Shown: positions 2,939 through 52,904, counted from the stretch's first letter. The stretch: 63,862 bases of DNA from Chrysemys picta bellii (GCF_011386835.1 NC_088807.1:19406139-19470000), one strand, 5' to 3'. A program made the numbers and translations. The notes: generated by a model not told the origin, from the sequence alone.

Positions 2939-3438
2939 NNNNNNNNNNNNNNNNNNNNNNNNNNNNNNNNNNNNNNNNNNNNNNNNNNNNNNNNNNNNNN
3001 NNNNNNNNNNNNNNNNNNNNNNNNNNNNNNNNNNNNNNNNNNNNNNNNNNNNNNNNNNNNNNNNNNNNNNNNNNNNNNNNNNNNNNNNNNNNNNNNNNNN
3101 NNNNNNNNNNNNNNNNNNNNNNNNNNNNNNNNNNNNNNNNNNNNNNNNNNNNNNNNNNNNNNNNNNNNNNNNNNNNNNNNNNNNNNNNNNNNNNNNNNNN
3201 NNNNNNNNNNNNNNNNNNNNNNNNNNNNNNNNNNNNNNNNNNNNNNNNNNNNNNNNNNNNNNNNNNNNNNNNNNNNNNNNNNNNNNNNNNNNNNNNNNNN
3301 NNNNNNNNNNNNNNNNNNNNNNNNNNNNNNNNNNNNNNNNNNNNNNNNNNNNNNNNNNNNNNNNNNNNNNNNNNNNNNNNNNNNNNNNNNNNNNNNNNNN
3401 NNNNNNNNNNNNNNNNNNNNNNNNNNNNNNNNNNNNNN
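2939..3438. other. Assembly gap (500 N)
   Basis: Run of N. Confidence 1.
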
Positions 3439-3484: not shown

Positions 3485-6400
3485 GCTTCGTGCCGCTTCC
3501 CTTCTTCCTCCGGCATGACTCCCCAATGTCCTGGGACCTCTGCGCCCCTATCCCGGCTGCCGAGAGCCTGGACTCGTGGGAGAGCAGCTTGCTGTGGGAT
3601 GGAGGGTCTCTGGTCATCGCCAATTCTTCCCAGGGGCAGCCGGGGACACCAGGGGGAGGTAAGGAGGGATTGAACTTGGGATCTTTGGCACCAAGAGCAC
3701 AGGGCTTTGCCACTGGAGCTAAAGGAGGAGGTCTAGCGGCCGCTAGCAGTAGGAGGCTGTTATCCTGGCAGCAAAGGGGCATGTGATGCATTTGGCCACA
3801 GACAGCACCGTCCACACCAATTACCAAGCTCAACCAGTTTTGAGCTTTAATATGCACACGTTAGGACAATATGTTACTACTTTAATTAAGCATAAAAAGG
3901 AAATAAGGCCGATAGAGCAGGGCAGCGTGACGATAAATTATTCAGCCTTAGGGCACAGGTAGCTGGTGCTGTTGGTGTTAGATTGAAGCCGGTCCAATCT
4001 GGTGTAAGTCTTATGTTGATTTATTCCCCTTTGGTCAAACCCACCGTTTTTATCCCCCGTGTCTTGTGACATGAGGCAGGCGCAGATCACTGAAACGGCT
4101 GTCTCCACCAACATATCTTAAATATAATTCCATACATGCCAGCGTAAAATTCTTTGAACGGCTGCGTTTTTTCCCTTAGTTGGCTAAACCGTTGCTTGGT
4201 ACCTTTTTTATTTATTTTCACTATTACGATTCGTCTTAATGAACGCTGGGTTTTCATTGCGTTCATGTGTCTTCCTGCGTCTTACGACAGGTTGTGTTGG
4301 CTTTTCCTCTTGGCGTCGCTGCGTGTCCAGCGTGTTTCGTGCTCCCTCGTCTGTTTTACCAGGGAGGTGGAGGTCTGGCTAGTGAATCCCCCATTTGGCT
4401 TTTGCCCTGTTATCTCTGCAGGCCAAGGTGACACAAACCAACTTTCTGATTTGTATTTTTGTTACAAGTTTTGAAAGCTGAAAAATTCCCTTTGGTGTTT
4501 TCTTAGAACACTGTTAAATAGAGAAGAGTTACATTTTCCACATTATTTAATAGAGTTAATTACACGTCTCTTTCCCCCCCTCTCTTTCTCCTTTTCCCTT
4601 TTTTTTTGTCTCTGGTTTTTCTCCTCTTTTTCCCCCCCCTCCTTTCTCTAACCTTCCCTCTTTTCGCTTCCCAGCTGGCTCCATCTCCCCACAGCCACCT
4701 CTGGATCTCTCCGGGTTTCCTTTGGCCGAGCCCTGGGACGTCCTCTCGCCGGATGCCCCCGCTGACGCAGCCCCCGATTTCGTTCACCCCCTGGTGACGG
4801 CTGCTCACCTGGATCCTGGTGCGCCGTGGTTGATGTCAAGGATAAATCCAGGTGACGTCTGGGGTGGGGGGTCGCTGCTTTTGCCTGCCCTGGGGAATTG
4901 TGGGTAGCTGGGATCCTGGTGTTGTGTGTCTCTGGGTCTCGGCCTGGGCTGGATCAGACACAGAGGCTAAGCTCCCACCGCTCCTCTGTAGGGAGGCAGA
5001 TGGTGTCCCAGTGCATGCTCTGAAATTCTGGCCAACTGCATGTTAGCCTTGTCCGTACCCTACTGCCTAGCCATGTCTGCCCCCGTGCATGCTGGGAAAA
5101 CCTGGCCAATGGCCTGTCCATATCCTACCACCCAGCCATCTCTGCCCCAGGGCATGCAGGGAAAATGTGGCCAATGGCCTGTCCATATCCTACCACCCAG
5201 CCACCTCTGCCCCAGGGCATGCAGGGAAAATGTGGCCAATGGCCTGTCCATATCCTACCACCCAGCCATCTCTGCCCCAGGGCATGCAGGGAAAATGTGG
5301 CCAACGGCCTGTCCAAACTCTACCACCCAGCCATCACTGCCATGGAAGATTTGGACAGAAACGACTGTTTTTGGTTTTTTTTCTCTTGGGTAAAAGTGAC
5401 TCGTTCTCATTTTTTACAAAAATGACTTTTTTTTTCTGTTTTGTTGCCAAAATGACTCTTTCTTTTACCTTTGAGTTTTCTATTTTTTCTTGTTGTTGCT
5501 TTTCTCTTTTATCTCCTTCCTTTCTTCTGTTTCTTTCCTTTTTTTTTACCACCTTCCCCCCCTCTTCTCTTTCCAGCTGGATCTACCCCCACTCCACCAC
5601 TTCTGGATCCCGCTGGTTTTCCTTTGCCCGAGCTCTGGACCGGGCCCCACATGGACGCCCCTCCTGACGCAGCTTCCGATTCCGCTCTGCCCCCCGTGGC
5701 TGCTGCCTGCCTGGACGTACCCGCAGATGTACCCCCGACATCAATGACAAATCCAGGTGAGGCCCCAGGGGAAGGTAGGCGCTGCCCACCCTGGAGGACT
5801 CTGTGTAGTTAGGATCCTGCATGTTATGAGTTGCTGATTCTCGGTCCGGTTAGAACAGGCTGAGCAGAGAGGCCGAGGGCTGGACCGGATCCAGAGGCTG
5901 CTCCCTCCATGCCCCTCCCTAAGGAGGCAGGCGCTGCCCCAGTGCACCCCGGGAAAACCGGGCCAACGGCCTGTCCATGTCCTACCGCCCAGCCGTCTCT
6001 GCCCCAGTGCATGCTGGGAAAACCTGGCCAATGGCCTGTCTGTATCCTGCTGCCCAGTATCTCTCATGGCGTCTCTGTCTTGCCAGACGTCACAGACCCC
6101 CTGCCGCTACTCTGCAGCACCCTGGGCTACTTCCCCAATGGTCTGCGGGTCTTCAGCCTGCAGAAGGCCATGTGGCTGAGGCACGGGGTGAACCTGGAGG
6201 CATTCAGCCAGCAACAGGGATATCTGAGCACCCTGGACTATCTGACCAGGCTGCGTGGGATCAGGCTACAGGGCTGGAGAGAGGGGAAAAGTGTCTCGTT
6301 AAGCTTCTAAAAGATGAGGCGAGAGGGATGGGGCTCCATGCGTCAGGGCTGAACTGGTCTTGATTAACGACGAGGACCAATGGGTATCTTGCACCTTCCT

Positions 6401-9400
6401 CTGAGGCTCATTAGAGTGTATTGTCTTGGGCTGACCCAGGACACTTTCTGGGCTTAACCGAGGTGTCCTGGGTGAATTGCTACCACCTGGTGGCAGGATG
6501 AGGGACTCTTGTCTGTGATGTAGTTAGGTCGACACGGTGTCAGTGTAGACGCCGGGTTGCTCAAGTCATGTTACCGGCTTTCAGGTAGGGTGACCAGATG
6601 TCCCGATTTTATAGGGACAGTCCTGATATTTAGGAATTTTTCTTATATCGGTACCTATTACCCCCCACCCCCGTCCCGATTTTTCACACTTTCTATCTGG
6701 TCACCCTACTTTCAGGAGCCGTCCCACTATGCCCCACGCCGACAGTACAATGGATGCAAGCTTTCCTGACCGGGACGCGCACTGCTGACACAGCTGTGTG
6801 CTGACAGAATTACGTCATGTAGACGTGGCCTTAGAGGCATCTAGAGTCAAACCAAATTGAAGTTTATTTAACGGCGCTTGAGACCGATTCAAAGAAGGGT
6901 TGGCCAACATAAGGTTGCAGGGGAAAGTAAAACAGAACACGCCATCTTCAGCTTCTAGTTTATTAACAAGTTCCTTCCCTCTCTCCTGAGGTATTTCTCA
7001 CCCAAAGGTCGGTCCATATAACGCTTGTCCGGCTCGGAGAGCTGGGATTTCATGAGGCACTCATGCTGGCAAAATATCTCCTCTGGAACGATACCATCTT
7101 GTGCCCATTTCTTTTTCTCTTGTAGGATGGGGTGTGTCTACGTTTGAAACTCTACAATGCTTCAGGGAGGTGTCCTCACACCCCTGAGCTATGCAGTTAA
7201 GCGGACAGTTTTCTTGCCCTACAGTCTCATTCATTATCTTTTCATTTCATTATCTTCAGCTCAGCCCAGAGGGTCTCCTATTCAGAGTCTTTTCTTGGGG
7301 GTTCTTTTCTTTGTAAACGCTTAGGTGCGTACCTGCTCCAGCCTGTAAACCCAGCAGGGCTGGGTGGAAAGATACTTGATTGTTCTCATTCTCAACTGAG
7401 TTAGCCGAGACCCGCCCTGCCTCGGGGGACATGCTTCATCTCCAGCAGTTTCAGAACATAATATCCTACGTTTTAGGTATCACTTAAACTCCTTCCTGTA
7501 CAAACACCTCACGCTAGCCACAAGGATCGGCCAGCCCTTAGCTTTCAGCCCCCTTCGGTGACGTCTCAGGAGGGTGGCCAGAAGCAGGTGTAATATACCT
7601 GTCTGGGCACGTCCGCGTCACGCTCCCCAGCGACGTGGCATCTCCCACAGTGCAGCCTCCTATCCCCAAGAGCGGGGACCCTGGTGCACTGTGGGAGATG
7701 CAGTCCAATCAGGGAGGCTCTGCTGTAGGGTAGAATCGGGGGGGCATAACGCACCCCGGCGACTTTTCTGAATGGAAACATTTTGTTTTTTTAATGAAAA
7801 CTTGAAATTTTCCGTGGAAGATTTGGACAGAAACGACTGGCTTTGGTCTTTTTCTCTTGGGTAAAAGTGACTTGTTCTCATTTTTTACAAAAATGATTTT
7901 TTTTCCTGTTGTTATGTTGCCAAAATGACTCTTTTTACCCTCGAGTTTTCTCTTTTGTTGTTGTTGTTTCTCTTCTCTTTTATTTCCTTCCTTCCTTCTG
8001 TTTCTTTCTTTCTTTTTTTACCACCTTCCCCCCTCTTCTCTTCCCAGCTGGATCTACGCCCACTCCACCACCTCTGGATTCTGTTGGTTTTCCTTCGCCC
8101 GAGCTCTGGACCGGGCCCCACATGGACGCCCCTCCTGATGCAGCCCCCGATCCCACTCTGCCCCCCGTGGCTACTGCCTGCCTGGATCCCGCAGACGTAC
8201 CCCCGACATCAATGACAAATCCAGGTGAGGCCCCAGGGGAAGGTAGGCGCTGCCCACCCTGGAGGACTCTGGGTAGTTAGGATCCTGCATGTTATGAGTT
8301 GCTGATTCTCGGTCCAGTTAGAACAGGTTCAGCAGAGAGGCCGAGGGCTGGACCGGATCCAAAGGCTGCTCCCTCCATGCCCCTCCCTAAGGAGGCAGGC
8401 GCTGCCCCAGGGCATGCTGGGAAAATGTGGCCAATGGCCTGTCCATACCCTACCACCCAGCCGTCACTGCCATGGTGCATGCTGGGAAAACCTGGCCAAT
8501 GTCCACACATTGTCTCTCTGGGTGGTGCTCTCCAAGGGCATAGGTTTGGGGTCTTGTGGGCGGGAGGGGCTCCCCTTCCCGTTGCTCAGCACCGCCGTCT
8601 CCCTCCCTCCGTGCAGACTTGGGTGAAGTCTTGACCCACGTCTCTCACACTCTGAGATGCCACCCCAAGGGTATGAGGGTGAAGCCGCTGACGAAGAGGC
8701 TGCGGAAGGAGCATGGGGTGGACCTGTTGGCATTCAGCCAGGACGGGGGGTACCAGGGAGTCGTGTCCTTCCTGCAGGAGATGCCGGGTATCGAACTCTG
8801 GAACCCCGAGAAGGGAGAGAAGTGTCGTGTCCTGAGCTGTACCTTTAAGAAGAGTGAGTGGGGAGATGGTTTCTTGTAGGGCTGCCCCAGCCCGGCCCCC
8901 TTCCTGAATGTGGAGAGAGCCCCTGGCCAATGGCACACTGGCCTCTCCGCACCCAGCTGTGTCTCCCCCAGTGCATGCTGGGGAAACATGGCCAATGGCC
9001 TGTCTGTATCCTGCTGCCCAGTATCTCTCATGGTGTCTCTGTCTTGCCAGACGTCACAGACCCCCTGCCGCTGCTCTGCAGCACCCTGGGCTCCTTCCCC
9101 AATGGCCTGCGGGTCTTCAGTCTGAGGAAGGCCATGTGGCAGAGGCACGGGGTGAACTTGGAGGAATTCAGCCAGCAACAGGGATATCTGAGCACCCTGG
9201 ACTATCTGACCAGGCTGCGTGGGATCAGGCTGCAGGGGCTGGAGAGAGGGGAAAAGTGTCTTGTCCAGCTTCAGAAGGGTGAGGAGAGAGGGATACGGTC
9301 CAGGCGTCAGGGCTGAACTGGTCTTAGGTAGGATGAGGGCAGGTTATCCCACTGCTCACACCAATGGACATCCCGCATCTTCCTCTGAGGCCAAATGGAC

Positions 9401-12400
9401 TAGATGGCCCTTTGGGCTTCCTCCCCCATGAGATTTCATCTCCCACAATGCACTGTCCTACTGCCATCATGCACCACCTCCCGCCACCAAGAATAGAGGC
9501 TATGGTGCATTGTGGGAGATGTAGTCCGACCAGGGAGCCTGGGCTGTAGAGGAGAATGGCAGTCACAAGGCATCTGAACCACAACTCCCATGAAGCACCG
9601 CAGTGACTTTTCTAAATTGAAACAGCTCACTGAAAACTTGAAATTTTCTATGGAAAATCTGGAGCACAGTGAGTCCTTTTTGCCTCATGTTTTCTTGACA
9701 AGCGTGACCTCCCCCCCTCCACTTTTTTTTTTTTTTTTTTTTTGAGAAAAGCGACTTTTTTCCCTCACTCTTTTTTGACATCAGCCATTTTTTCTCTGAT
9801 TTTTGACAAAAGCGAGGTTTTTCCCTCCATATTTTTTTTTGACAAAAGTGACATTTTTCCATCTGTTTTCTTGACAAAAGTCACTTTTTTACTTCACATT
9901 GTTTGGCAAAAGCGACCTTTCCCCCCCTCTGTTTTTTTTTTTTTTTTTGAGAAAAGCCGCTCCTTTTTTCTCACATTGTCTTGACCAAAATTACTTTTTT
10001 TCCCCCTTCACGTTTTTTGACACGTGCAATGGTTTTCTCTCGGATTATTAACAAAAGCAATGTTTTCCCACAGCATTTTTTGACAAGAGTCGCTCCTTTC
10101 TTCCTCAGCTTTCTTCACAAACGGCGACTTTCAGTTTCCTCGGGCCTGGTCTACCCGTAAAACGTCGGTCGACGGAGCTGCGGCGTTCAGGGGTGTGAAC
10201 CAACCGCGCTTCTGAGCCCCGCAGCCTCGCTGCCCTGGCCCCGGAGTAGACTTGACTAGGCGGAGGATGAATGTGTCCGTCAATGTGGTTCCCGTTATGC
10301 GGGGAGCGAAGTTCCCCCAGCAAACCCCCGTTCCGGTGCTATAATCGGTGCGGCGGGGTTACAGCCCCGCAGACACGGCCCCATGGCTGCGCTGCTCTGA
10401 CGTCCGTAGTGTAGACGTGGCCTCAGGGTTTTTCGGACAAACTCGAGTTGGTTTTTTTTTCACTCCGATGTTTGACAAAAGCCTCCGTTCCCCACAGTTT
10501 TCTTCACCAAAGGGACTCTGTTAGCGCTTTCTGGGGGGACAGAAATATCTCCCCCCCCCCCCCTTTCTTCTGTTTGTTTTGCAAACGTGATGCTTTTCTC
10601 CTCAGTCTTTTGACCAAAAAATATGGTAGGAAAGGTGGAAGCGGCAGCCGGGCCTGTGCCCATTATGAGGGATAGCCGTGCCCGGTGGTGGGAGCTGGGG
10701 GGGGACGGGACATGCCCAGTGGTGGAAGCTGTGGGGGGAGGGGAACGTGCCCGGTGGCAGGAGCTGGGGGGCAGAGGCGTGCCCGGTGAGGACAGCTGGG
10801 GGGGTGAGGGACGTGTGGGGGCCGGGTGTACTTGTCTTTTCACTCCCACTGTGGTGCTCTTGTTTCTTCTCCCTTCCTTTAGGTGACGCTGTGAAGCCCC
10901 CTGCTCCGCAGCCCCCCCCAGACCCCGCTCCCCCATCGGCCCAGCCCAGCAGCAGCCCCCCGCCCGATGCCCCTGCCGACGGGGGGCCGACGGGAGCCCC
11001 GGGGGAGACGCCCGGTGAGCAGCTCTGCCGGCTTCTCAGTGAGGCCGCCGCGTGTGGGGCGTGAGCCTGGGCGGGGAGGCCGCAGCCCAAGCCAGGCCCC
11101 CCAACGCCACCTCCCATTGTCCCATAGCCTGAGCTCCCGTCTGCCCCCGTGGGGAAGGGCTCTGTGGGGCTCGGCGGCTGGTCTCTTTCCCTCACCCATC
11201 TCTGGGGGGGCTATGGGGCAGGGCACGTTGGAGGGAGATGGCTGGGGGTGTTGGGGGGGGAGTCTGTGGGTCTGTGTCGACGGGGGCTAGGTGTGTGGCA
11301 CCATTGCCATTTGTGGGGGACATCTTCGGGGCTGTTGGGTTCATGTTGGTGGGGGGGCTGGGGTTAGAGGGAGCGGGGTAGGGGGATGTCGGGGAGGCTG
11401 GGGATGCAGGGAGCAGTTTGGTGGGGTAGGTGGTTGTGGGGGGGCTGGGGATGGGGGAGCAGGTTGGTGAGGTGAGGGGTGGGGGGGATGGGGATGGGGG
11501 AGCAGGTTGGGAGCTGTGGGGGGGGCTGGGGATGGAGGGAGCAGGTTGGTGGGGTGTGGGGACTGGGGATGGGGGAGCAGGTTGGTGGGGTGGGGTTCTG
11601 TGAGGGGATGGGGGTGGAGGGAGCAGGCTGTGCGGGCTGTGTGTGTGTGGGGGTGCTGTGGGGATGCCTGTGGCCGGGATACAGGGGGTGGCTGGGGGGA
11701 CACACTGGCAGCGGACTGTGAAGAGTGGGGGGCAGCATGTGGGGTGCTCTCCTGGGCCCTGCCCCCGCTCTGGGGACGCCCGAGGACTCGGGCCCGGGGG
11801 CTGCCGAACAACCCCTCGCCCCCAGGGCCGGGTGCACACGCACAGGGTGCCCCATGACGGGGGGGCTCTCAGCTGGCGCAGGCTCTCACAGCCCCCCCAT
11901 CCCCCCGTCTCGTGGCAGGCTTGGCCGAGGTCTCGGCCTGGGTGCGGGACGTGCTGGGCCGTTTCCCGCTGGGGCTGAAGGTGGGCAAGCTGAAGGAGGC
12001 GCTGCGGAGCGAGCGTGGGCTGGACCTGGAGGAGCTGAGCCGTCTGCGGGGCTGCGGGGACGCCCTGCACCTGCTCCGGGCTCTGCCCCACCTCTGGCTG
12101 CGGGACCCGGGCCAGGGCGACGCCTGCCTGGCCCGGCTGGACGTGGGTAGGTGGGCAAGCGGCTGGGAGGGTGCCGAGCAGCTGGGCGGGAGCTGGGGTG
12201 AGATGCAGCTGGGGCCGTGGAAGGTGTGGGGAGGACGTGGCTTTTTACAGATCCAGACTAACAGGGCTACCCCTCTGACACTTGAGTACTTGTCGCACCT
12301 TAGAGACTAACAAATTTATTTGTGCATAAGCTTTCGTGGGCTAAACCCCACTTCATCGGCTGTATGTAGTGGAAAGTACAGTAAGAAGATATATATCATC

Positions 12401-15400
12401 TGTGGTGCATCCTTCTGGGTGTTGTCTTAATGCTGCCACATTTATTTTCAAAGAAGGTGTTTTCAAAAGAAGGTGCTCGCTTCTAACTCCCAAGGCCCTC
12501 AGTATGTCGGATCTTCTTTAATGAGCCCACTTGACAAGTTTTATTGTTCTTGGGTCTGGCTTCCATCCCCTCTCCAACTGTTGCAGCTGTCTGGAGGTGC
12601 TGCCTTCCAGGCCTTACCCATTCACACCTCGTTCATTCAACAGGGCAATTGATTAAAAGGGGGCAGATATTATTCTACTAGCGAAAAGACAGTTTTCTTC
12701 TACCTTAACTATCCTTAGGGGCTATAACATTATACCAAGGCTCAATACAAAGGGTACGTCCAGACTACCCGCCGTATCGGCGGGTAGCGATCGATTTATC
12801 AAGGATCGATATATTGCGTCTCGTTAACACGCGATATATCGATCCCCGAACGCGCTCACCGTCGACTCCGGAACTTCACCAGAACGAGCGGCGGTAACAG
12901 AGTCGACGGGGGAGCCGCGGCCATCAATCCCGCGCCGTGTGGACCCAAGGTAAATCTATCTAGATACTTCGACTTCACTACGCTATTCACGTAGCTGAAG
13001 TTGCGTATCTTAGATCGATTTCCCCCCACCCCAGTGTAGACCAGCCCAAAGTTTCTATATAAGGATTTGGTACAAAGTTCCCATATCAAAGGACTTGATA
13101 TAAAGTTGTATGAAAATGGAGGTTATATGTGGAAAGACTTGATACACCTCTACCCCGATATAACGCTGTCCTCAGGAGCCAAAAAAATCTTACCACGTTA
13201 TAGGTGAAACCGCGTTATATCCAACTTCCTTTGATTCACCGGAGTGCGCAGCCCACTCTCCCCCCCCCCCCCCCCCCCCCGGAGCGCTGCTTTACCATGT
13301 TATATCCAAATTCGTGTTCTACTGGGTCGTGTTCTAGCGGGGTAGAGGTGTACAAGGTTGTATGAAGAGGCATAATACAAAAGTCATATGAAAATGATGA
13401 AAACGATACGCAGTTACGCAAAGATGCTTAATGCGGAGATTTATCTACAGGGGCAGGGTACGGCCGGGCATGTGCCCAGGAGTGGGGGTTCCTGCTGTGT
13501 GTGTAGGGGGGAATTGGGGCACAACAGAGATTATGGGGTGTGGGGAGGCTGTTCCTCGTGGTGGGCAGCATGTGGGGTGCTCTCCTGGGCCCTGTCCCTG
13601 CTCTGGGGACGCCCGAGGACTCAGGCCCGGGGGCTGCCGAACGGCCCCTCGTCCCCAGCGCTGGGTGCATACGCACAGAGTGCCCCATGGCGGGGGGGCT
13701 CTCAGCGTGCGCAGGCTCTCACAGCCCCCCTATCCCCCCCGTCTCGTGGCAGGCTTGGCCGAGGTCTCGGCCTGGGTGCGGGACGTGCTCGGCCGTTTCC
13801 CGCTGGGGCTGAAGGTGGGCAAGCTGAAGAAGGCGCTGTGGAGCGAGCGCGGGCTGGACCTGGAGGAGCTGAGCCGTCAGCGGGGCTGCGGGGACGCCCT
13901 GCACCTGCTCCGGGCTCTGCCCCACGTCTGGCTGCAGGACCTGGGCCAGGGCGACGCCTGCCTGGCCCAGCTGGACGCGGGTAGGTGGGCAAGCGGCTGG
14001 GGGGGACAGCTAGGGCCGTGGAAGCTGGGGGAGTACGTGGCTGGGAGGGGGGCTCTGGTCCATGTGGGAGGGGGTAGGGTACGGCTGGGCATGTTCTCGG
14101 GGGGTGGGGAGGGGGGAGGCATGGCTGGGCATGTGCCCAGGGAGTGGGGGTTCCTGGTGGTGGGGGGTTAGCAGGGCACAACGGAGATTATGGGGTGTGG
14201 GGAGGCTGTTCCTGGTGGTGGGAGGCATAGGTGGGCCTGTTGCAGGGCAGGGGGCTGTGCCCGGGGGTGGGGAGCTAGGGGAGGGGAGGGGAGAGGGGGA
14301 CATGCCCAGTGGCAGGAGCTGGGGGAGGGGAGGGGGACGTGCCCGCTGGTGGGAGGGGGATGTGTGGGGGCCGGGTGTACATGTCTTTTCACTCCCACTG
14401 AGGTGCTCTTGTATCTTCTCCCCTCCTTTAGGTGAGGCTGTGACGCCCCCTGCCCCACAGCCCCCCCCAGACCCCACTCCCCCATCGGCCCGGCCCAGCA
14501 GCAGCCCCCCGCCCGATGCCCCTGCCGACGGGGGGCCAACGGGAGCCCCGGGGGAGACGCCCGGTGAGCAGCTCAGCCGGCTTCTCAGTGTGGCCGCCGC
14601 GTGTGGGGCGTGAGCCTGGGCGGGGAGGACTCAGCCCAAGCCAGGCCCCCCCAATGCCACCCCCCCATCGCCCCATAGCCTGAGCTCCCATTTGCCCCCC
14701 TGGGGAATGGTTCTGTGGGGCTCGGCGGCTGGTCTCTTTCCCTCGCCCATCTCTGGGTGGGCTATGGGGCAGGGCATGTTGGAGGGAGATGGGTGGGGGG
14801 CGTTGGGGGGTGTGTCTGTAGGGCTGTTTTGGCGGGGGCCAGGTATGTGGCACCATTGCCATTTGTGGGGAAAATCTTTGGGAGGCTGTCTGGTTTATGT
14901 TGATGCGGGGGCCTGAGAGGGGGCTGGGGTTGGAGGGAGCCTGTGGCCGGGGTACAGGGGCTGGCTGGGGGGGGGGATACTGGCAGCGGACTGTGAGTAG
15001 TGGGGGGCAGCATGTGGGGTGCTCTCCTGGGCCCTGCCCCCGCTCTGGGGACGCCCGAGGACTCAGGCCCGTGGGGGCTGCCGAACGGCCCCTCGTCCCC
15101 AGCGCTGGGTGCACATGCACAGAGTGCCCCATGACGGGGGGGCTCTCAGCGTGCGCAGGCTCTCACAGCCCCCCCATCCCCCCGTCTCGTGGCAGGCTTG
15201 GCCGAGGTCTCGGCCTGGGTGCGGGACGTGCTGGGCCGTTTCCCGCTGGGGCTGAAGGTGGGCAAGCTGAAGGAGGCGCTGCGGAGCGAGCGCGGGCTGG
15301 ACCTGGAGGAGCTGAGCCGTCAGCGGGGCTGCGGGGACGCCCTGCACCTGCTCCGGGCTCTGCCCCACATCTGGCTGCAGGACCCGGGCAAGGGCGACGC

Positions 15401-18400
15401 CTGCCTGGCCCGGCTGGACGCGGGTAGGTGGGCAAGCGGCCGGGGGGGTGCCGGGCAGCTGGGCCTATGGCGGGAGATGCAGCTGGGGCCCTGCCCGGTG
15501 TGAAAGGTCGGGGAGGACACAGCTGCGAGGGGCTGTGCTCGGGGGGGATAGAGGGGCACGGCTGGGCATGTGCCTATGGGGGGGCAGGGTACAGCTGGGC
15601 ATGTGCCCGGGGGGGTAAGGGTTCCTGGGGGCGGGGTTGCAGGGCACAGCTGGGGTTAGGGGCTGTGAGGAGGCCATGCTGGGCAGGGGGATGCATGGGT
15701 GGGCCTGCCCCGGGGCGGGGGGCCCTGTGCCTGCTGGCCGGAGGTGGACCCGTGGGGGCCTCGCGTCCCCCCCATTGAGGGGCTGTTTTGTGTCTTTTCC
15801 CCTCCTCTTCAGATGCTGCTGTTAATGCCCCTGCGCTCCCCGCCCCCTCCCATCCTGCCAAAGCGGGGGGGCCGGGTGCCGCGGGCCCAGCGAAGCGGAC
15901 GCAGAGCCAGCGTCGGGTGGCAAAGCCCGGCGCGATGGAGGCGTTGATCCGGGGCGCCCTGGCCCCCTACCCCTTTGGCATGCGGGTGAAGAACCTGCGG
16001 AAGCTGCTGGTGGGGAAACATGGAGCCGAGCTGGAGGCCTTCAGCCAGGCCAGAGGCTACGGGGACGTGGTCTCCTTCCTGCGGGATGTCCCCGGACTCA
16101 CGCTCCGGGGCCCAGAGAAGGGCAACAACTGCATCGTGTGGCTCCAGAGAGGTAGGGAGTGTGGCCCAGAGCGAAGCTCAGAACCCAGGAGTCCTGGCTC
16201 CCAGCCCCCCTGCTGTAACCACTAGCCCCCACTCCTCTCTCAGAGCCGGGGATAGAACCCAGGAGTCCTGGCTCCCAGCCCCCCTGCTGTAACCACTAGC
16301 CCCCACTCCTCTCTCAGAGCCGGGGATAGAACCCAGGAGTCCTGGCTCCCAGCCCCCCTGCTGTAACCACTAGCCCCCACTCCTCTCTGAGTCGGGGATA
16401 GAACCCAGGAGTCCTGGCTCCCAGCCTCCCCTGCTCTAACCACGAGGAATCTGCCATTACCAGCCCTGTGGGGTTAAAGGCCAAAGGGCAGAAAAATGTG
16501 ACACCAACCTGGGACCCTGACTCGCTCCACTCTGCCCTGTCACCCCTTTCCCCGTCCCACAAACGACCCCTGGCAGGCCGAGGGGGGAGGCGGGCTGTCA
16601 TTTCGGGGTGGGCAGTGAAGGCCCCATTCTGCCCTCTCCAGGGTCCCCGCATCCCCACGCAGCTTCCTGTCCCGGGAAAACAGCTGCCGGCATCCCCCAG
16701 GAGCCAGGGGTGGCCGACAGCTGGGACGCCGCTGACTGGGACCCAGAGTCTGCTGCTGCGCCGGAGAGAAGTAGGGTGACCAGATAGCAAATGTGAAAAA
16801 TCAGGAAACTTTTGGAGAGGGGAGGGTAAAACCCCTAATATTGGGATGTCTGGGCACCCTAGAGAGAAGTGAGGGGGCTGTGCTGAGCGGGGGGGAGTAA
16901 CCCATAGGGCTGCGTTGCCTTTGTTATATTCACCTGTAACCTACAGGCCCGTATCCCGTAGAGAAACGGCCCCACACTTGCCTCTAAGCTGCCGTGGCAG
17001 GAACAGGGAAGTGGTAACCGCAAAACCCGTTGGAGCCAGGGGTGACTGGTGCGGTGATGAATTAAAATGCCATCAGCCCGGTCCCTCCCCTCCCCTCCCC
17101 TCTCCTCCCATAGCCAGATTTCACGGGGCAGGTCTGATTTCACGGTCCATGACACGTTTTTCACGGCTGTGAATATGGCAGGGCCCCACCTATCGGATAA
17201 GTGCACCCGAGGAGAAGGGTGAGGAAGTTAGATTTGGGCACGGAAGGCCGAGCACTTGAATGAATCCTAGAACTGGCAGGGACCTCGAGAGATCATCTAG
17301 TCCAGTCCCCTGCACTCATGGCAGGACTAAGTATTATCTGACCATCCCTGACAGGTGTTTGTCTAACCTGCTATCAAGGTCAATTCCCCACTCTGGCACT
17401 TCAGGTGCAGAAAGTGGGGGCCGGCAAGGATTCAAACAATTAACACTGGCCACTCCAGACTTGTATTAAACTCCCAAGGTTCCAGCTTCTCTCTGACTTT
17501 GGCTGGGTAGATGCTGCCACCACCCAAATGCAAACCCCTTGAAACCCAGGAAGGTGCATTTGAGAATTCCTTCTCATGGGGTACCCTCAAGTCCTTTCAC
17601 CTCCCCCCCCCCCCCCCGGGGAAGAGCTGAGAAAGGAAATCAGCTGTTGCCACCAGCTAATTAAATAACATGCGCACAAACCTCTTAGGACACCAAAAAT
17701 CCAATCCTGTTCTTAAAAAGGGTAAATTTTATTAAAAACAAAAAGAAAGAAAATACATCTGGGAACTCAGGCTTTTGCCAGATTTAAATAACCCACTTAC
17801 AAAATTTAAACACCAAGAATAGCCTTCTTGAGGTGCAGCTTAAAGGTCACAAGCAAAACAAAACACATTTGGGTTTAGCACAGAGGAGTCCACAAGCCAA
17901 TAAGAAATAACCCTAATCGCGTCTTCCTAGACATTCCCTAATTTACTTACATTTCTGGGGTTTCAGGTAAGCAATCTTTAGGTATGATCTGATGGTTTTT
18001 CATACCTGGTTTAAAGCTTCTCACAGCATAACTGCTTCCTGTTCCCCTCTTTCCCGGAGAAACACAACAGGGACAAAGGGAAGTCTTTTCCCAATTTTAA
18101 AACGTTCTAGCCTCCCATTGGCTCCTTTTACCTGCGGGCTTGTTAACCCTTTACAGGAAAAGTAGGTAGAGAACAACCACGAAGAGGGATTCCACAGCCA
18201 ACTGGCTGGCTGGGTGTCTACAAAAGGGAACTACCTCCTCCTCCCTCATTTATCACACCTGCTCTGAAAAACTTCCAATGATGCTGATTCCACAACCTCC
18301 CTGGGCAATTTATTCCAGTGCTTAACCACCCTGACAGGAAGTTTTTCCTAATGTCCAACCTAAACCGCCCTTGCTGTAATTTAAGCCCATTGCTTCTCAG

Positions 18401-21400
18401 GGGTTAATGCGAATTTTCTCCCTCCTCTTTGTAACAGCCTTTTATGGACTTGAAAACTTATCACCTCCTCTCTGTTTTCTTTTCTCCAGACTAAACAAAC
18501 CCGTGGTTTTTTCAATCTTCCCTCATAGCTCATGTTTTCTAGACCTGAATCATTTTTGTCGCTCCTCTTTGGACTTTCTCCAGTTTGTCCACAACTTTCC
18601 TGAAATGTGGCACCCAGAACTGGACCCAATACTCCAGTTGAGGCCTAATCATTGCAGAGTAGAGCGGAAGAATTATTTCTCGTGTCTTGCTTACGACACT
18701 CCTGCTAATACAGCCAAGAATGATGTTTGGTTTTTTTGCAACAGCGTGACACTGTTGACTGGTATTTAGCTTGTGATCCACCATGACCCCCAGATCCCTT
18801 TCTGCAGTACTCCTTCCTAGGCCATCATTTCCCAGTTTGTATGTGTGCAACTGATTGGTCCTTCCTAAGTGGAGCGCTTTGCAGGGTCCTTATTGAATTT
18901 CATCCTATTGACTTCAGACCATTTCTCCCGTTTGTCCAGATCATTTTGAATTTTAGTCCTGTCCCCCAAAGCGCTCACAACCCCTCGAAGGGTTATTCAT
19001 GATAGCATTCGGGCCCTGTAATAGGGCCAACCACCGTGTGGAGGGGGCTAGCTGGCCGTCACTTGAGCCACCTTCTCTATTGTTATCTGCTGTCCCTCTT
19101 GAGCGTTGAGGAACCTGGACCATCAGACCTTTGTCTCTGCCCACCAGGCCCTCGAGGAAGGGTGTGAGCATGCAGATTTAGTAGGTACTCCAGATATCTC
19201 CAATACTGTATTGTTCCTCTCTCGTTATGAGCTTTTCTGGCTTTATTGCTGATCTTAATCAAAATCGCCACGGCTTTGCTTTGCCTCCGGTGCGCGTGTC
19301 CTTGCCAGACACCCCGAGGTTCCCACCAAGATTTCGAACTCCTTGGTATTAGCCTGATTCTGGGACAAGAACCTTATTCCCACTGGATCAGTTGGCCATC
19401 AGTACAAGTATTGTTAACGATGAATAGGATCGGGCGACGCTCCCTGCCCGGGTGTGTATGACGGGCCAAACCGATCACCCCGGATCCCGGAGTTGGGGGG
19501 GTGCGGATCCGAATGGGCCAGAATCCAGGGAATAGCTAGAGGCCAGTGAGAGGATGTGTAGGGGCTGCCCCCTAGTGGAGGGTGGGGGAATTGTAGCCTG
19601 TGTGCTGGAAGAAGTGGGGTGTAGCTGTTTTTTCCCGCCCCCCCACACCTAGGACATAGGAAACTCAGATTCATCCCTTCCCCTGGAGCCAGCCATTCCC
19701 TGCCCTGGGGCCAGGTGGGAGCTGGTGCCCCCAGAGGGGAAAAGGCCCCATTCCCCACCCCTGACCTTGGCGATCTTCCTTCCCTCGGCCTCTGTGCAGG
19801 TGCGACTGAGGTCCTGACGCTGCTCAAGTGCTTGCTACGCCCATACAAGTCTGGCCTGCAGCTGCAGAAGCTGCAGGAGTTGCTGCTGGAGAGACACGGG
19901 CTGGATCTGAAGCGGTTTGTCAGCTCCCAGGGCGAGGAGGACGTGCTCGGATTCCTGCAGAGGCGCCTGCCCGCGCTGGAGTACAGGCAGCCGGAGAAGG
20001 GAGCGAAGTGTATCGTCTGGCTGGGGACAGGTACGATGGGGTGTGTGTGGGGGGGAGAACGGGACAATAAATCCCACTCAGAGCTGGGAACAGAACCCAA
20101 GAGTCCTGGCTCATAGCCCCCTGCTCAAACCACTAGGCCCCACTCCCCTCCCAGAACAGGGGAGAGAACCCAGGAGTCCTGACTCCTCCTGGACTGGCTG
20201 TCAGAACTCCATTCCACAGGCCAGAGCCCTGCCCCCAGCTCTCCATGGGGCCATTGCGGGTAGCTGAGACCTGGATTCCTTATTGTCTGACTCTCCGGCT
20301 GTGGGGCAGGCCGCGGGGTTCCCCCCCCAACTCACCCATGGCATAAACCCGCCTTTGCTCCCGTGCATCGTGGGAAAAGTCCAGGCGGGTCCAGAGCGGG
20401 ATACAGGCAGAGCGGTAGCTGCCGTGCATGCTGGGGGATGCCACGTGCCTGTTACCCACCCTGACGGCAGTTTTCCCCCCCCTCCCCCCAGGGCAGAAGA
20501 AAGGCTCTGGATCTTTGCCCCCTGGCAGTGCCCGCCCCTTGCCTGGCTCCAAGAGGTGCCTCCTCCCAACGAATGCCGCGGAGCGCCCGCCCCAACCCGC
20601 CACCGCCTGCCTCAACCCCCGGCTGCCCAGTGCTACCACCAACCGGCCTCTGCTTCCCAGCCTGCCTTCGGCCCGGGAGCCCTTCCGGGCCCCTGCCGCC
20701 CAGGGAAAGCTGGGAAAGTCCCCAGGGGCCAACCCCCGCCTCCCAGCCTGGTTACGGAGCCCACCCCGGCCCACCGGCACCTGCTCAGGCCTACGAACAG
20801 AGGAGGGGACCCACGAGTCCAGGACCAGGCCTGCCAGCGCCCCCTTGGTTCTGCGAGCAGAGGAGGGGACTCAGGAGTTCGGGGCCAGGCCTGCCAGCGC
20901 TCCCTTGGCCCTGCGAGCAGAGGAGGGGATCCAGGAGTCCGGGGCCAGGCAGGCCAGCGCCCCCTTGGTTCTGCAAGCAGAGGAGGGGACCCAGGAGTCC
21001 AGGGCCCAGCCCCCTGAGGACCTGAGGGAGCTGAAGCGGAAGGTGGGGGCCATCCTGGCCGGGCACCCCGGGGGCATGTCCCTCTTCCAGTTCCGTGCCG
21101 CGTACAGCGCCGCCCACCAGCACCCGCTGCCCCTGGGCTGCACGGCCTCCACCAAGCAGCGGCTGGCGCAGATGCCTGACGTGGTGAGGATGCAGGGCTG
21201 CGGGGTGCAGATGCTGCTGCTGCCAGTGGACCCCGACGGACCCCCCAGGGCAGAGCCTGGTACGTAACGGGGGGTTGGGGGGACAGCTGCCTTGCAAGGT
21301 GTGGGGGAGATATTAAGGGGCTGGGCTGGGTCCCCCCCAAGGGATGTGTGATTGGGGGGGGGAGGTCAGGCTGGGTCCCCTAAAGGGGTTGATGGGGCTT

Positions 21401-23197
21401 CCCCCACCCAGATGTTAAGGCCCCGAACCATCGGCCACTCTGTTGTGGGCGTAGGAACAGGGCCAGCCCAGCGCTACGGGCCAGAGGGTCCCGTTGTGAC
21501 TGGCTCGGCTGGTCCTCCTCCTTCCCAGCTCTCCCTGTGGCGGGACGTCTCCCACAATGCCCTGCTGGGACTGCTTGCTGTGTGGCCCAGACCTTCCCAG
21601 AATGCACTGGGGCATAATGCACAGCGGGGCGGGACGTTTCCCAGTATGCATCGCTGGTGCCACGCTGCATCCCATTGGCCCAGGCACGCTGGGCATTTCC
21701 CAGAATGCACTGGGGCAGGTGACGCATCGAGGGTGGGGGCAGGACTCTGTCGCCCCCTGCTGGTTGGTCCGGCTCAGAGGATAAAACCCTCCAGCCGCTG
21801 CCGGCTGAGGGAGCTCCCCCACCAGCCCAAGCAGCGTCTAGTGCTGAGCTTGGCAGGCCCAAACCTCGCGGGCAGGGGCAGGGGCGTGGCTCAGCTGTGG
21901 GGGTGGCACCGGGCTCTGTCAGTGGGATTTAACTGGGTTTGTTTTTCAAGGTCTCGCCCTGTGGATCCCACAAGAAGCTGCTGCCCTGGCTGGGGACACC
22001 GACGACCCATCTGAGCCCCTTCCCACCCTGGCCGAGATCCCTCCCGTCCCAGCAGCTCCCGACCTGACTGGGGACCCCGACACCCCAGCTGAGTCCCCTC
22101 CCACCCTGCCCGACATCCCTCCAGTCCTCACAGCTCCCGACCTGACTGGGGACCCCGACACTCCATCTGAGCCCCCTTCCTTCCCGGTAGCTCCCGACTT
22201 GACTGGGGACCCCGACTCCGCAGCTGAGCTCCCTCCCACCCTGCCCGAGATCCCTCCAGTCCTCACAGCTCCCGACCTGACTGGGGACCCCGACACTCCA
22301 TCTGAGCCCCCTTCCTTCCCGGCAGCTCCCGACTTGACTGGGGACCCCGACTCCGCAGCTGAGCTCCCTCCCACCCTGCCCGAGATCCCTCCAGTCCTCA
22401 CAGCTCCCGACCCGGCTGGGGACCCCAAAGTCCCAGTCAAGCCCCCTCCCACCTTCGTGGCTCCGAGATGGGGGCCGAGCCTCCAGGCCATGCAGCGCCC
22501 AGAGGCTGCCCGACCTGAAGCCAGCTGGGAGTTACCTGACTTGGTGCCCAGCGCCCCCGTGGTTCTCCCAGCATCGGGGCCGTGCAGCAGGTCGTGGCTC
22601 TGGCTTGGGGCAGAGTCCCCCCTCGCCCCGGCTGATCCCGGTGCTGCTGCTCGCCCGGTCGTGTACCCTCCCACCCGGGAGGTCCCCCCGGCCCCCGCTG
22701 CAGCCCCAGAGTCGCCCTCCCTGTGCCCAGCGGCACCGGGGCCACCCCAGGCCCGGCTCAAGCGGGTCCAGTTGGTGCCTCCCTTCCAAGACCACCCTTT
22801 GGCTGGGGATGCCTCTCGGGCACAGCCGGTCCCTAAAGCCGTGGGTCAGAACCAGGGCACATCAGCGGCTGTGGGATCCCCTGTGGGCCCGATCCCTGCA
22901 GATCCATCCACGGGCCAGGCCGTCTCCCCTATTAAGCAGCTCTCAGGGGTGGCCCCGGATCCCCTCCCTCCTCCAGAGGCCAGTGTCTCAGCGACCCCCG
23001 AGCAGGGCTGGCCAGACACCGGGCGCCCTGGTTCAGGTGGAGATATCGGCTCTCCTGTTGACCCCTTGCTGCGCTGCCATCCGGCCCAGCCGGTCCCCTC
23101 TGCAGGGACGACCCCGCCGGGCCCGTGGGCCGGGATCCCCTCGGCCCCACCGGCCCACTCGCCGCCACACCACACCGACACCTGCATTCTCCTATAG
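3485..23197 (+). CDS. Gene A: uncharacterised multi-LOTUS (OST-HTH) protein, 8 intact LOTUS exons plus Pro-rich linkers and C-terminal CaaX (CILL); ~1,600 aa if all exons are joined; start exon not found
   Basis: AG/GT-bounded exons: 3485-3658, 4675-4851, 5577-5756, 8048-8224, 8617-8853*, 9051-9278*, 10883-11014, 11919-12146*, 13753-13980*, 14432-14563, 15196-15423*, 15813-16151*, 16642-16770, 19800-20030*, 20492-21259* and terminal 21951-23197 (*=LOTUS). Every internal exon is phase 1-1, a multiple of 3 and stop-free. AATAAA at 23295-23300. Confidence 0.72.
5085..5340. repeat. 63-bp minisatellite (~4 tandem copies; further single copies near 5940-6050, 8410-8500, 8920-9000)
   Basis: Unit CATGCAGGGAAAATGTGGCCAATGGCCTGTCCATATCCTACCACCCAGCCATCTCTGCCCCAGGG. 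Confidence 0.9.
6087..6313 (+). pseudogene. Decayed LOTUS exon (duplicate of 9051-9278)
   Basis: Near-identical to 9051-9278 but 1 nt shorter (ctacagggctgg vs ctgcaggggctgg), which shifts the frame. The donor is mutated from G|GTGAGG to G|ATGAGG at 6314. Confidence 0.75.
6586..6708. mobile_element. hAT-family MITE
   Basis: TIRs TAGGGTGACCAGAT / ATCTGGTCACCCTA with an 8-bp TSD CTTTCAGG (6578-6585, 6709-6716). Confidence 0.9.
8617..8853 (+). CDS. LOTUS/OST-HTH exon, gene A (79 codons)
   Basis: gtgcag|...|gtgagt. VSHTLRCHPKGMRVKPLTKRLRKEHGVDLLAFSQDGGYQGVVSFLQEMPGIEL fits the LOTUS pattern (L..hP.G..l..L......G.dL.....GY..l..fL..mP.v.l). Confidence 0.82.
9051..9278 (+). CDS. LOTUS/OST-HTH exon, gene A (76 codons)
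   Basis: ttgccag|...|gtgagg. LCSTLGSFPNGLRVFSLRKAMWQRHGVNLEEFSQQQGYLSTLDYLTRLRGIRL. Confidence 0.78.
11919..12146 (+). CDS. LOTUS/OST-HTH exon, gene A (triplicated, copy 1)
   Basis: gtggcag|...|gtaggt. VRDVLGRFPLGLKVGKLKEALRSERGLDLEELSRLRGCGDALHLLRALPHLWL. Confidence 0.8.
12252..12380 (-). mobile_element. Penelope-like retroelement terminal fragment with a degenerate minimal hammerhead ribozyme motif
   Basis: gagtacttgtcgcaccttagagactaacaaatttatt... is the end sequence I recall for turtle PLEs. The minus strand 12321-12364 reads CCGATGAA-GTGGGGTTTAGCCCAC-GAAA-GCTTATGC-AC. Confidence 0.65.
12752..13047. mobile_element. PIF/Harbinger-like non-autonomous element
   Basis: Imperfect TIRs GGGTACGTCCAGACT / AGTGTAGACCAGCCC, a 3-bp AAA flank on both sides and a CpG-rich, partly palindromic interior. 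Confidence 0.6.
13145..13350. mobile_element. Tc1/mariner (Tigger-like) MITE
   Basis: TIRs CACCTCTACCCCG / CGGGGTAGAGGTG flanked by TA on both sides. Confidence 0.8.
13753..13980 (+). CDS. LOTUS/OST-HTH exon, gene A (triplicated, copy 2)
   Basis: Same splice sites and length as 11919-12146; 10 substitutions by eye and no stop. Confidence 0.78.
15196..15423 (+). CDS. LOTUS/OST-HTH exon, gene A (triplicated, copy 3)
   Basis: Same splice sites and length as 11919-12146; intact frame. Confidence 0.78.
15813..16151 (+). CDS. Linker + LOTUS/OST-HTH exon, gene A (113 codons)
   Basis: ctcttcag|...|gtaggg. LIRGALAPYPFGMRVKNLRKLLVGKHGAELEAFSQARGYGDVVSFLRDVPGLTL. Confidence 0.83.
16772..16861. mobile_element. 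hAT-family MITE inserted at a splice donor of gene A
   Basis: TIRs TAGGGTGACCAGA / TCTGGGCACCCTA; 8-bp TSD GAGAGAAG (16764-16771, 16862-16869). Confidence 0.88.
17258..18960 (-). mobile_element. 5'-truncated CR1 LINE, interrupted by a solo LTR
   Basis: ORF 18539..18850 (DLGVMVDHKLNTSQQCHAVAKKPNIILGCISRSVVSKTREIILPLYSAMIRPQLEYWVQFW) is the CR1 ORF2 C-terminus. The 3' end lies near 17258. Confidence 0.9.
17372..18257 (-). mobile_element. Solo LTR (Gypsy-type) inside CR1
   Basis: TA(TG)TC...ATCACA ends with a 5-bp TSD CCTGC (17367-17371, 18258-18262). Related to the 42742-44798 LTR in the opposite orientation. Confidence 0.8.
19800..20030 (+). CDS. LOTUS/OST-HTH exon, gene A (77 codons)
   Basis: ctgtgcag|...|gtacga. 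LLKCLLRPYKSGLQLQKLQELLLERHGLDLKRFVSSQGEEDVLGFLQRRLPALEY. Confidence 0.8.
20492..21259 (+). CDS. Pro-rich + 20-aa repeat + LOTUS exon, gene A (256 codons)
   Basis: ccccag|...|gtacgt. Three to four copies of RAEEGTQESGARPASAPLVL, then LKRKVGAILAGHPGGMSLFQFRAAYSAAHQHPLPLGCTASTKQRLAQMPDVVRMQG. Confidence 0.82.
21951..23197 (+). CDS. Terminal coding exon of gene A: acidic/Pro-rich repeats ending in CaaX (DTCILL*)
   Basis: Acceptor tttttcaag| at 21950; the phase-1 frame is continuous with ORF 22199..23197. Stop TAG 23195-23197; AATAAA 23295. Confidence 0.78.
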
Positions 23198-42013: not shown

Positions 42014-42334
42014 GGTGCCCAGCCGGGACCTCAGGCAGCCCTGGGTGCAGCCCACCTGTGAGGGGAGAGCTAGTGAGCCAGAGACAGAACCCAGGAGTCC
42101 TGGCTCCCAGCCCCTCCCCTGCTCTAACCCACTAGACCCCACTCCCCTCCCAGAGCCAGGAAAGAACCCAGGAGTCCTGGCTCTCAGCCCCTCCCCTGCT
42201 CTAACCCACTAGACCCCACTCCCCTCCCAGAGCCAGGAAAGAACCCAGGAGTGCTGGCTTCCTTTGGACAGACCCAAATAAATGAGCTCCCAGGACAGAC
42301 ACCAAAACCAGAAGCCCCTCACCTAGGGGTCCCC

Positions 42335-52100: not shown

Positions 52101-52904
52101 TGCCGGGGCAGATCCAGGTGCCGGCCATGGTGCTGGTGGAAGAGCCTCCCGAAATCCCACAGGGGGACACCCCCTGGGTGGCTCAACAGTAGCCCCAGCA
52201 CGGCCCCCTGGAGGGTCAGCTGCGAGCCGGGATCCAGTCCCCCCCCCGCAACAGCTGGAAGGAGAAACAGCTCTTGGGGGGCTCAAAGGGCACCAGGTGG
52301 GAGACTTTACCCTTCACTGGCCACCAGGGGGACTCGCCCACAGAACAGCAGAGGGGTGGGCCTGGGCACAGCCAGGGTACCAGGGTAGATGGGCCCCTGC
52401 TCCAAAGTGGGAGAGAAATTCCCTGCACACAGTGGGACTGCAGGTCAGGACTAAGGGTCTCATCAGCAGTGGACAACTGGGGGGGGGGCAGCCCCCCTCC
52501 CCAGAGCCACTGGGCCCCACTCCCCTCCCAGAGCTGGGCATGGAACCCAGGCATCCTGGCTCCCAGCCCCCCCCCCCGCTCTAACCACTAGACCCCACTC
52601 CCCTCCCAGAGCCGGGGATAGAACCCAGGAGTCCTGCTGGCTCCCAGCCCCCGCCCCCCGCTCTAACCACTAGACCCCACTCCCCTCCCAGAGCCAGGGA
52701 TAGAACCCAGGAGTCCTGCTGGCTCCCAGCCCCCGCCCCCCGCTCTAACCACTAGACCCCACTCCCCTCCCAGAGCCAGGGATAGAACCCAGGAGTCCTG
52801 CTGGCTCCCAGCCCCGCCCCCCCACTCTAACCACTAGACCCCACTCCCCTCCCAGAGCCGGGGATAGAACCCAGGCGTCCTGGCTCCCCGGTTTCACCTG
52901 CCAT
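49147..52904 (-). CDS. Gene C: uncharacterised protein with two LOTUS (OST-HTH) domains, a Pro/Ser-rich tail and polybasic CaaX (KRKPPKHKPDQCVLL*); 585 aa, complete
   Basis: Exons 52904-52898 (GAGGCT-ATG-GCA-G|gtgaaa), 52254-51895*, 50876-50337*, 49997-49147 total 1758 nt, in frame; all introns are phase 1. LOTUS1 AVLGLLLSHPGGVPLWDFGRLFHQHHGRHLDLPRHGYRSLHHLLGDMKELVVL. LOTUS2 LEQNVARVLRGHPGGISLFRFRQAYGAAYSHPFPLDSSASVKEQLAAMPGAVRVEG. Confidence 0.82.

Follow-up and report, generated by a model that had tools for sequence, protein, structure and literature searches.

Can a gene change its number of domains freely when none of its internal exons can disturb the reading frame, and does it do so? 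The question is raised by gene A, the name used here for LOC101932420 (NCBI) of the painted turtle Chrysemys picta bellii, which lies on the plus strand, at 4.7-23.2 kilobases (kb), of a stretch of 63,862 nucleotides (nt) (GCF_011386835.1 NC_088807.1:19406139-19470000; this whole stretch is called the window below, and positions are counted from its first letter). An earlier interpretation made from the DNA by itself (the sequence-only reading) had described gene A as an accordion, with internal exons that are all symmetric, having phase-1 introns on both sides (phase 1-1), and with LOTUS domains whose number can change by duplication, deletion or skipping without breaking the frame. It had further suggested that this number would tune the phase behaviour of a condensate scaffold. 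From the analysis reported here it is likely that gene A is a modular multi-LOTUS gene, of a phase 1-1 layout inherited from the ancestor of its family, whose modules turn over in frame.

Exon layout and domain content of gene A

A six-frame jackhmmer search of the window, seeded with one open frame, returned eight copies of a domain of ~75 amino acids (aa) at 6.0-20.1 kb of the plus strand, and three further copies on the minus strand at 37.4-40.3 kb. A profile search of 1.84 billion representatives gave 102 relatives with 1-9 matched stretches each, and a word search with the orthologue from Caretta gave the turtle orthologues together with six isoforms that NCBI annotates for C. picta. These isoforms (X3-X8; P0117-P0122) and the turtle orthologues were mapped onto the window, and the junctions were solved for pairs of AG and GT sites that reproduce the protein; each exon was treated separately, and translation was confined to single codons at the junctions. 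Exon B of the resulting model (the exons are named below) is identical to the C. picta proteins at 255/255 residues, as opposed to 245/255 for Malaclemys, exons L2 and L3 match the C. picta proteins at 75/75 residues each, and L7 and K1 are also identical. On the exon B comparison, a species other than C. picta was rejected as the source of the window. The few mismatches in the other exons of gene A fit a different individual or assembly.

The mapping yields 15 consecutive internal coding exons at 3485-21259, with lengths that are all divisible by 3 and that span 129-768 nt, exactly the size range given by the sequence-only reading. All 15 are bounded by AG...GT sites, contain no internal stop and have a phase-1 intron on either side. 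More specifically, the split codons at 15/15 constitutive junctions, and at a further seven skip junctions, translate into the residues of annotated turtle isoforms; for example, skipping of L2 turns FKK|N|VTDP into FKK|S|DAVK (A+GT = S), and skipping of exon S gives LQR|G|ATEV (G+GT = G). A run of 15 internal exons with phase-1 introns only is far beyond chance, though these exons are not independent, being members of about six families linked by duplication.

From 5′ to 3′, and always on the plus strand and in phase 1-1, the series opens with a cassette exon, N2 (3485-3658, 174 nt, encoding GFVPLPFF...PGG), which is skipped in Malaclemys X2 and Caretta X2. Three proline-rich exons follow, namely P1 (4675-4851, 177 nt), P2 (5577-5756, 180 nt), which is an emydid-specific duplicate of P3, and P3 itself (8048-8224, 177 nt). 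Next come the LOTUS exons L1 (8617-8853, 237 nt), skipped in C. picta X8, and L2 (9051-9278, 228 nt), skipped in C. picta X7 and Malaclemys X3. The linker exon K1 (10883-11014, 132 nt) precedes the LOTUS exons L3 (11919-12146, 228 nt) and L4 (13753-13980, 228 nt), and a second linker exon, K2 (14432-14563, 132 nt), which is intact and shares the splice sites of K1, precedes L5 (15196-15423, 228 nt). K2 is used in Malaclemys X2 and is absent from C. picta X3-X8. The remainder consists of L6 (15813-16151, 339 nt), which combines a linker with a LOTUS domain, the small cassette exon S (16642-16770, 129 nt; skipped in C. picta X3), the LOTUS exon L7 (19800-20030, 231 nt) and exon B (20492-21259, 768 nt), which holds a disordered repeat region and a C-type LOTUS domain. 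The terminal exon (21951-23197, plus strand) is entered in phase 1 and ends in DTCILL before the stop. The first coding exon, which reads MDPERPGSAP... in relatives, was looked for upstream of 3485 and not found; it probably lies in the gap of 500 N at 2939-3438 of this otherwise GC-rich vertebrate DNA. In the 3-kb intron between S and L7 there is also a fragment on the minus strand (18539-18850) that, judged by eye from an open reading frame translation, is like the C-terminus of a CR1-type reverse transcriptase.

The repeated module is not an obvious LOTUS domain at the level of single exons. Taken singly, the exons of the window score 13.7-22.5 bits against DUF7515 (E = 1e-4; the Pfam cut-off is 27), the mid-type modules score 12-13.5 bits against OST-HTH (PF12872; E = 0.07-0.23), under the cut-off of 23.8, and a profile search of PDB sequences gave no match. 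Full-length orthologues pass the cut-off of 27 for DUF7515 (PF24359), with 63.9 bits for P0110, 71.1 for P0002 and 69 for P0006, and the neighbours of the module in the ESM Atlas are OST-HTH clusters. An AlphaFold2 model of exon L1, built from an alignment of 11 copies, reaches a predicted local distance difference test (pLDDT) value of 86.7, and its top Foldseek matches in the PDB are Oskar (5CD7/5CD8/5A49/5NT7), Tejas (8WXS) and TDRD7 (2LH9/3RCO), with template modelling (TM) scores of 0.63-0.71, probabilities of 0.99-1.0 and an E-value of 0.026. The N-type domains of the orthologue of gene C, a neighbouring gene described below, and of a lizard homologue are OST-HTH domains at 43-46 bits. 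On these findings, the repeated module is accepted here as a LOTUS-like winged helix of the DUF7515 subtype.

Gene A is best explained as belonging to a family of vertebrate multi-LOTUS proteins that has no name, most of which end in a CaaX box. In this gene, every module sits on an exon of its own, be it a proline-rich segment, a linker, one of about seven minimal DUF7515-type LOTUS-like domains or the one C-type LOTUS domain, and every coding intron found splits a codon after its first base, that is, in phase 1. Because modules with exons of their own are separated by phase-1 introns, any internal exon can be duplicated, deleted or skipped in frame. In the mechanism proposed, copy number would change by unequal recombination between units of exon plus intron, 1-1.5 kb in length, a process that short repeats in the introns may help.

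Gain and loss of modules

Recent tandem duplications had been part of the accordion description, and all three of those proposed are real. They were recovered when the window was compared with itself by self-BLAST, which gave every identity in this paragraph; the duplicated units of gene A are 87-94% identical. In the first duplication, 5340-6036 matches 7812-8504 (90.6%) and 5988-6361 matches 8952-9325 (92.3%). The second is that of a unit of linker plus LOTUS exon, with 10733-11385 matching 14288-14936 (87%) and 11661-12228 matching 14935-15502 (92.5%), and is accompanied by a copy of the LOTUS part only (11725-12171 against 13558-14005, 94%). The third, a triplet at 37.3-41 kb, belongs to gene B, another neighbour, and has pairwise identities of 90%, 87% and 77%.

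Loss can be seen as well. At 6087-6290 on the plus strand lies L0, a decayed duplicate of LOTUS exon L2. It has lost 1 base pair (bp) near 6271, carries a TAA in frame and has AT in place of GT at its donor; its acceptor is intact, only a weak cryptic donor is left, at 6290, and no annotated isoform uses it. As a functional exon L0 was rejected, on account of the deletion, the TAA and the lost donor.

The introns offer sequence at which such exchanges could start. A 65-bp intronic minisatellite (5004-5341, 5935-6064, 8403-8504, 8966-9028) occurs just upstream of L0, L1 and L2. The 447-bp segment that carries L1 is extra in the second unit of the first duplication and is bracketed by copies of this minisatellite, and in the first unit the corresponding copies stand side by side. 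This looks like an exon gained or lost, in either direction, through recombination between repeats. In addition, short tandem clusters of an interspersed repeat (~75 bp) occur on either strand, and many of them lie in introns that adjoin exons of genes A, B and C (among others at 16180-16446, 20092-20186, 37758-37980, 38904-39208, 40384-40683, 41109-41212, 42086-42262, 51595-51716 and 52489-52888).

The number of modules also differs between species. Per protein model, and as far as annotation tells, there are 5-8 mid-type LOTUS modules among turtles and 1-8 across the family. Five are found in Chelonoidis and Dermochelys, six in Gopherus, Pangshura, Eretmochelys and Lepidochelys, seven in Caretta, Natator, Malaclemys, Mauremys and C. 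picta, and eight in Carettochelys. Outside turtles, Alligator has 6, squamates have 2-8, the amphibians examined 3-6 and a shark 1. In a tree of the modules, those of turtles fall into five orthologous classes, and amplification is lineage-specific. The class of L3-L5 has one to three copies that group by lineage, with identical triplets in Mauremys and identical pairs in Gopherus, and the copies of the window and of Malaclemys are positional orthologues in this tree; Carettochelys has amplified the L1/L2 pair instead. Except for K2, whose use differs, the modules of the window are those of the NCBI models of C. picta.

The layout itself seems to be much older than these copies. Family members were found from sharks to crocodilians, and there was no bird or mammal member among the relatives retrieved. 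In two caecilians, the skipping of a cassette turns a junction residue G/T into A, which is possible with phase 1 and not with phase 2, and in squamates the junction residue is unchanged or fits both phases in most isoform pairs. Because the caecilian junction residues fit phase 1 only, the phase 1-1 layout looks ancestral to tetrapods, inherited from the ancestor of the family, and would not be a turtle novelty.

The alternative that survives best agrees with all of this as far as the architecture is concerned, and takes the number of modules to drift, with no tuning of any kind, as unequal crossing-over and gene conversion act on a region rich in GC and in repeats. Its chances come close to even. 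The L3, L4 and L5 exons are 95.6-97.4% identical, little above the 91-96% of their upstream intron flanks, and the codons that differ between pairs of them are mostly non-synonymous (non-synonymous:synonymous 8:2, 5:1 and 6:1; 19 vs 4 codons in total). This divergence fits near-neutral change since duplication, and the differences, too few to be decisive, may point to relaxed or diversifying evolution after it. Drift is also favoured by the decay of L0, by the plentiful intronic repeats and by the frequent identity of copies within a species (Mauremys, Gopherus), a pattern that fits concerted evolution or very recent duplication. It is less easily reconciled with the strong conservation of orthologous modules among emydids (for L2, L6 and L7, identity between Malaclemys and the window is 100%), with the five module classes being kept in all turtles, and with the retention of multiple LOTUS modules from lungfish to crocodilians. 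We regard the frame-neutral architecture as real and ancient, and the copy number as drifting through unequal recombination. The further suggestion of the sequence-only reading, by which module number would tune the valency of condensates, may be kept as a hypothesis.

Cassette isoforms and the reliability of gene models

The six annotated isoforms of C. picta differ by whole in-frame cassettes only. The cassettes are either of two proline-rich exons of 59 aa, L1 (79 aa), L2 (76 aa) and exon S (43 aa), and isoform X6 is without one exon (76 aa) of the L3-L5 triplet. The presence or absence of an in-frame LOTUS cassette likewise distinguishes annotated pairs of isoforms in Malaclemys, Caretta, Pogona, Podarcis raffonei, Eublepharis and Sphaerodactylus (in the last, the differences amount to one and three exons of 73 aa), and also in two caecilians (Geotrypetes and Rhinatrema), a lungfish (Protopterus) and a frog (Pyxicephalus), so that cassette isoforms are annotated in eleven species in total, C. 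picta included. With these isoforms, all three frame-neutral changes envisaged in the accordion description have been seen: duplication in the duplicated exons, deletion in the decayed L0 and skipping in the annotated cassettes.

It may be asked whether such isoforms are products of the annotation process. Skipping, and some of the differences between species, would then stem from automated prediction on repetitive exons, through reads that map to several places and through collapsed assemblies, and the mRNA itself may be invariant. Indeed, the evidence for isoforms is drawn entirely from automated models, by Gnomon or otherwise, L3, L4 and L5 are 96-97% identical, the N-terminus of C. picta X3-X8 is implausible and read in an alternative frame, and chimeric models that join genes C and B exist (P0013, P0161; see below). 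This explanation is nevertheless unlikely, given that unique, non-repeated exons are skipped too (L1, L2, the 129-nt exon S and N2), that like cassette differences recur independently in eleven separately annotated species, and that the genomic phases and lengths are independent of the isoform models. It is very improbable that much of the repeat region of gene A is pseudogenising and only partly translated, a view that can appeal to the dead L0, to the absence of K2 from C. picta X3-X8 and to the relaxed look of duplicate divergence, and that is opposed by the open frames and canonical splice sites of the 15 other internal exons, by the use of K2 in Malaclemys X2 and by a reading frame that runs to a conserved C-terminal CaaX box.

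Several points weigh against the account of an ancestral layout with in-frame module turnover and should be considered together. The evidence for the splice sites and for skipping consists of NCBI models, protein homology and consensus signals, and the apparent skipping within the near-identical L3-L5 may reflect ambiguous read mapping in the annotation pipeline. The module counts of other species are those of gene models on assemblies of uneven quality, in which collapsed repeats would lower the counts, and phases outside the window come from junction residues in two caecilians only. The 19 vs 4 codons of the L3/L4/L5 pairs carry no sign of purifying selection since duplication. Finally, single LOTUS exons fall under the Pfam thresholds, and the Foldseek E-value is just 0.026.

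The statement that every internal exon is symmetric 1-1 had been made for the three LOTUS genes of the window, and it is borne out for 15 exons in gene A, seven in gene B and two in gene C; it fails for one annotated exon. This exon of 137 nt (4291-4427, plus strand) lies just upstream of 4675, where the span described by the sequence-only reading starts, and is present in NCBI isoforms X3-X8 of C. picta. Its length is not a multiple of 3 and it puts two stop codons into the frame that is conserved in turtles, and the annotated N-terminus of X3-X8, which reads exon 3485-3658 in another frame, looks spurious. The 137-nt exon is probably a poison exon or an untranslated one (in the 5′ untranslated region), and is treated here as a candidate for either.

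Gene A has two neighbours, both on the minus strand: gene B at 37-42 kb and gene C at 49-52 kb. Gene B (37441-42013) starts with an ATG near 42013, and its first exon has a phase-1 donor at 41848. Orthologues P0035 and P0012, together with splice signals, place seven phase 1-1 exons at 41363-41223, 40872-40684, 40309-40082, 39418-39227, 38818-38588, 38190-37999 and 37671-37441, with lengths of 141, 189, 228, 192, 231, 192 and 231 nt, which form three units of linker plus LOTUS exon. The status of the last LOTUS exon as an internal exon is uncertain, the orthologue model reading through its donor. Gene C (49147-52254), for which Mauremys orthologues came from a second word search, has introns that are all in phase 1, and consists of an N-type LOTUS exon (52254-51895, 360 nt), a C-type LOTUS exon (50876-50337, 540 nt) and a terminal exon (49997-49147) in which the phase-1 frame is open for 282 codons and ends in KPDQCVLL before the stop; the frame of Mauremys reevesii for this tail was rejected, as it stops at 49925 in the window. 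A different amplification is found in Protopterus annectens, where the LOTUS domains that recur several times are of the N-type and C-type and not of the mid-type (P0068/P0160, 2807/2879 aa); in a tblastn comparison with the gene C exons of the window, three segments match the N-type and five the C-type. Outside the three LOTUS genes, a direct duplication of 461 bp (54200-54660 against 57730-58189) has 98.5% identity.

Two public models, P0013 (Chelonia mydas UY3_01738) and P0161 (Mauremys mutica KIL84_002162), splice a LOTUS exon of gene C in frame onto the LOTUS exons of gene B, mapping to 50583-50335 of the window and then to 40349-37439. Such joins are possible because all exons share phase 1-1, and the models are either mis-joins or read-through transcripts. 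More generally, the exons are all frame-compatible with one another, which makes it easy for models in this region to be mis-joined, and annotators should be warned that automated annotation is error-prone here.

Relation to known systems and significance of the layout

Symmetric exons have been linked with protein disorder and alternative splicing, with an origin by internal tandem duplication and with use as cassettes (PMC3632108). Gene A resembles the class 1-1 genes built by exon shuffling (Patthy's rule), in that its modules have exons of their own with phase-1 flanks, homologous exons stand in tandem, cassettes are used and many linkers are disordered. The classic 1-1 modules are mostly extracellular domains. 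By contrast, the modules of the turtle gene are LOTUS-type winged helices and proline-rich linkers, in a protein with a CaaX box at its end. A search of the literature for DUF7515 and for the LOC identifiers returned no paper on this family.

Among proteins with LOTUS domains, MARF1 has several in tandem and TDRD5/TDRD7 have three (PMC6168497, PMC7498356). They share with gene A the presence of several tandem domains of the minimal LOTUS type, and the turtle module is predicted to adopt a fold that matches LOTUS structures of TDRD7 and Oskar. Gene A differs from them in that it is without NYN, RRM and Tudor domains and has a C-terminal CaaX box, in that its mid-type modules are of the DUF7515 subtype, under the OST-HTH threshold, and in that module number varies between close species. 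MIP-1/MIP-2 (EGGD) of C. elegans and Oskar are LOTUS scaffolds of germ granules (PMC8331183, PMC12803171), and the combination of LOTUS domains with long disordered regions, which gene A shares with them, is the basis of the analogy with a multivalent scaffold. However, these proteins use an extended LOTUS domain that binds Vasa, whereas the turtle modules, known from sequence, are ~75 aa long and have no obvious C-terminal extension. Other LOTUS domains bind Vasa/DDX4 or G-rich/G-quadruplex RNA (PMC7498356).

With regard to copy number, the parallels are with exon arrays of variable length. In LPA (kringle IV-2), NBPF (Olduvai) and the super-repeats of nebulin and titin, in-frame exon units have been amplified by unequal recombination, and domain number varies between species or individuals. 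In contrast to these arrays, variation within the species is not seen in gene A when the window is compared with the NCBI models of C. picta. The mechanism, in which symmetric exons permit in-frame duplication and skipping, is a textbook one, and gene A is a new and unusually complete example of an established principle in an undescribed family.

The most far-reaching proposal is that the protein is a lipid-anchored multi-LOTUS scaffold, in which the number of modules binding RNA or helicases would be set within cells by combinatorial splicing of cassettes and between lineages by gain and loss of exons. At present this must be considered a long shot. If it were true, valency would tune the assembly of an RNA-protein compartment on a membrane; to our knowledge, regulated valency of this kind is undescribed for LOTUS proteins. 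What can be offered for this uncharacterised family of vertebrate proteins is a gene model that is clean and checkable. Because every module is a phase 1-1 cassette, the number of domains in the family is plastic, evolutionarily and probably also transcriptionally, and the family provides a natural series in which to ask how the number of LOTUS domains affects function.

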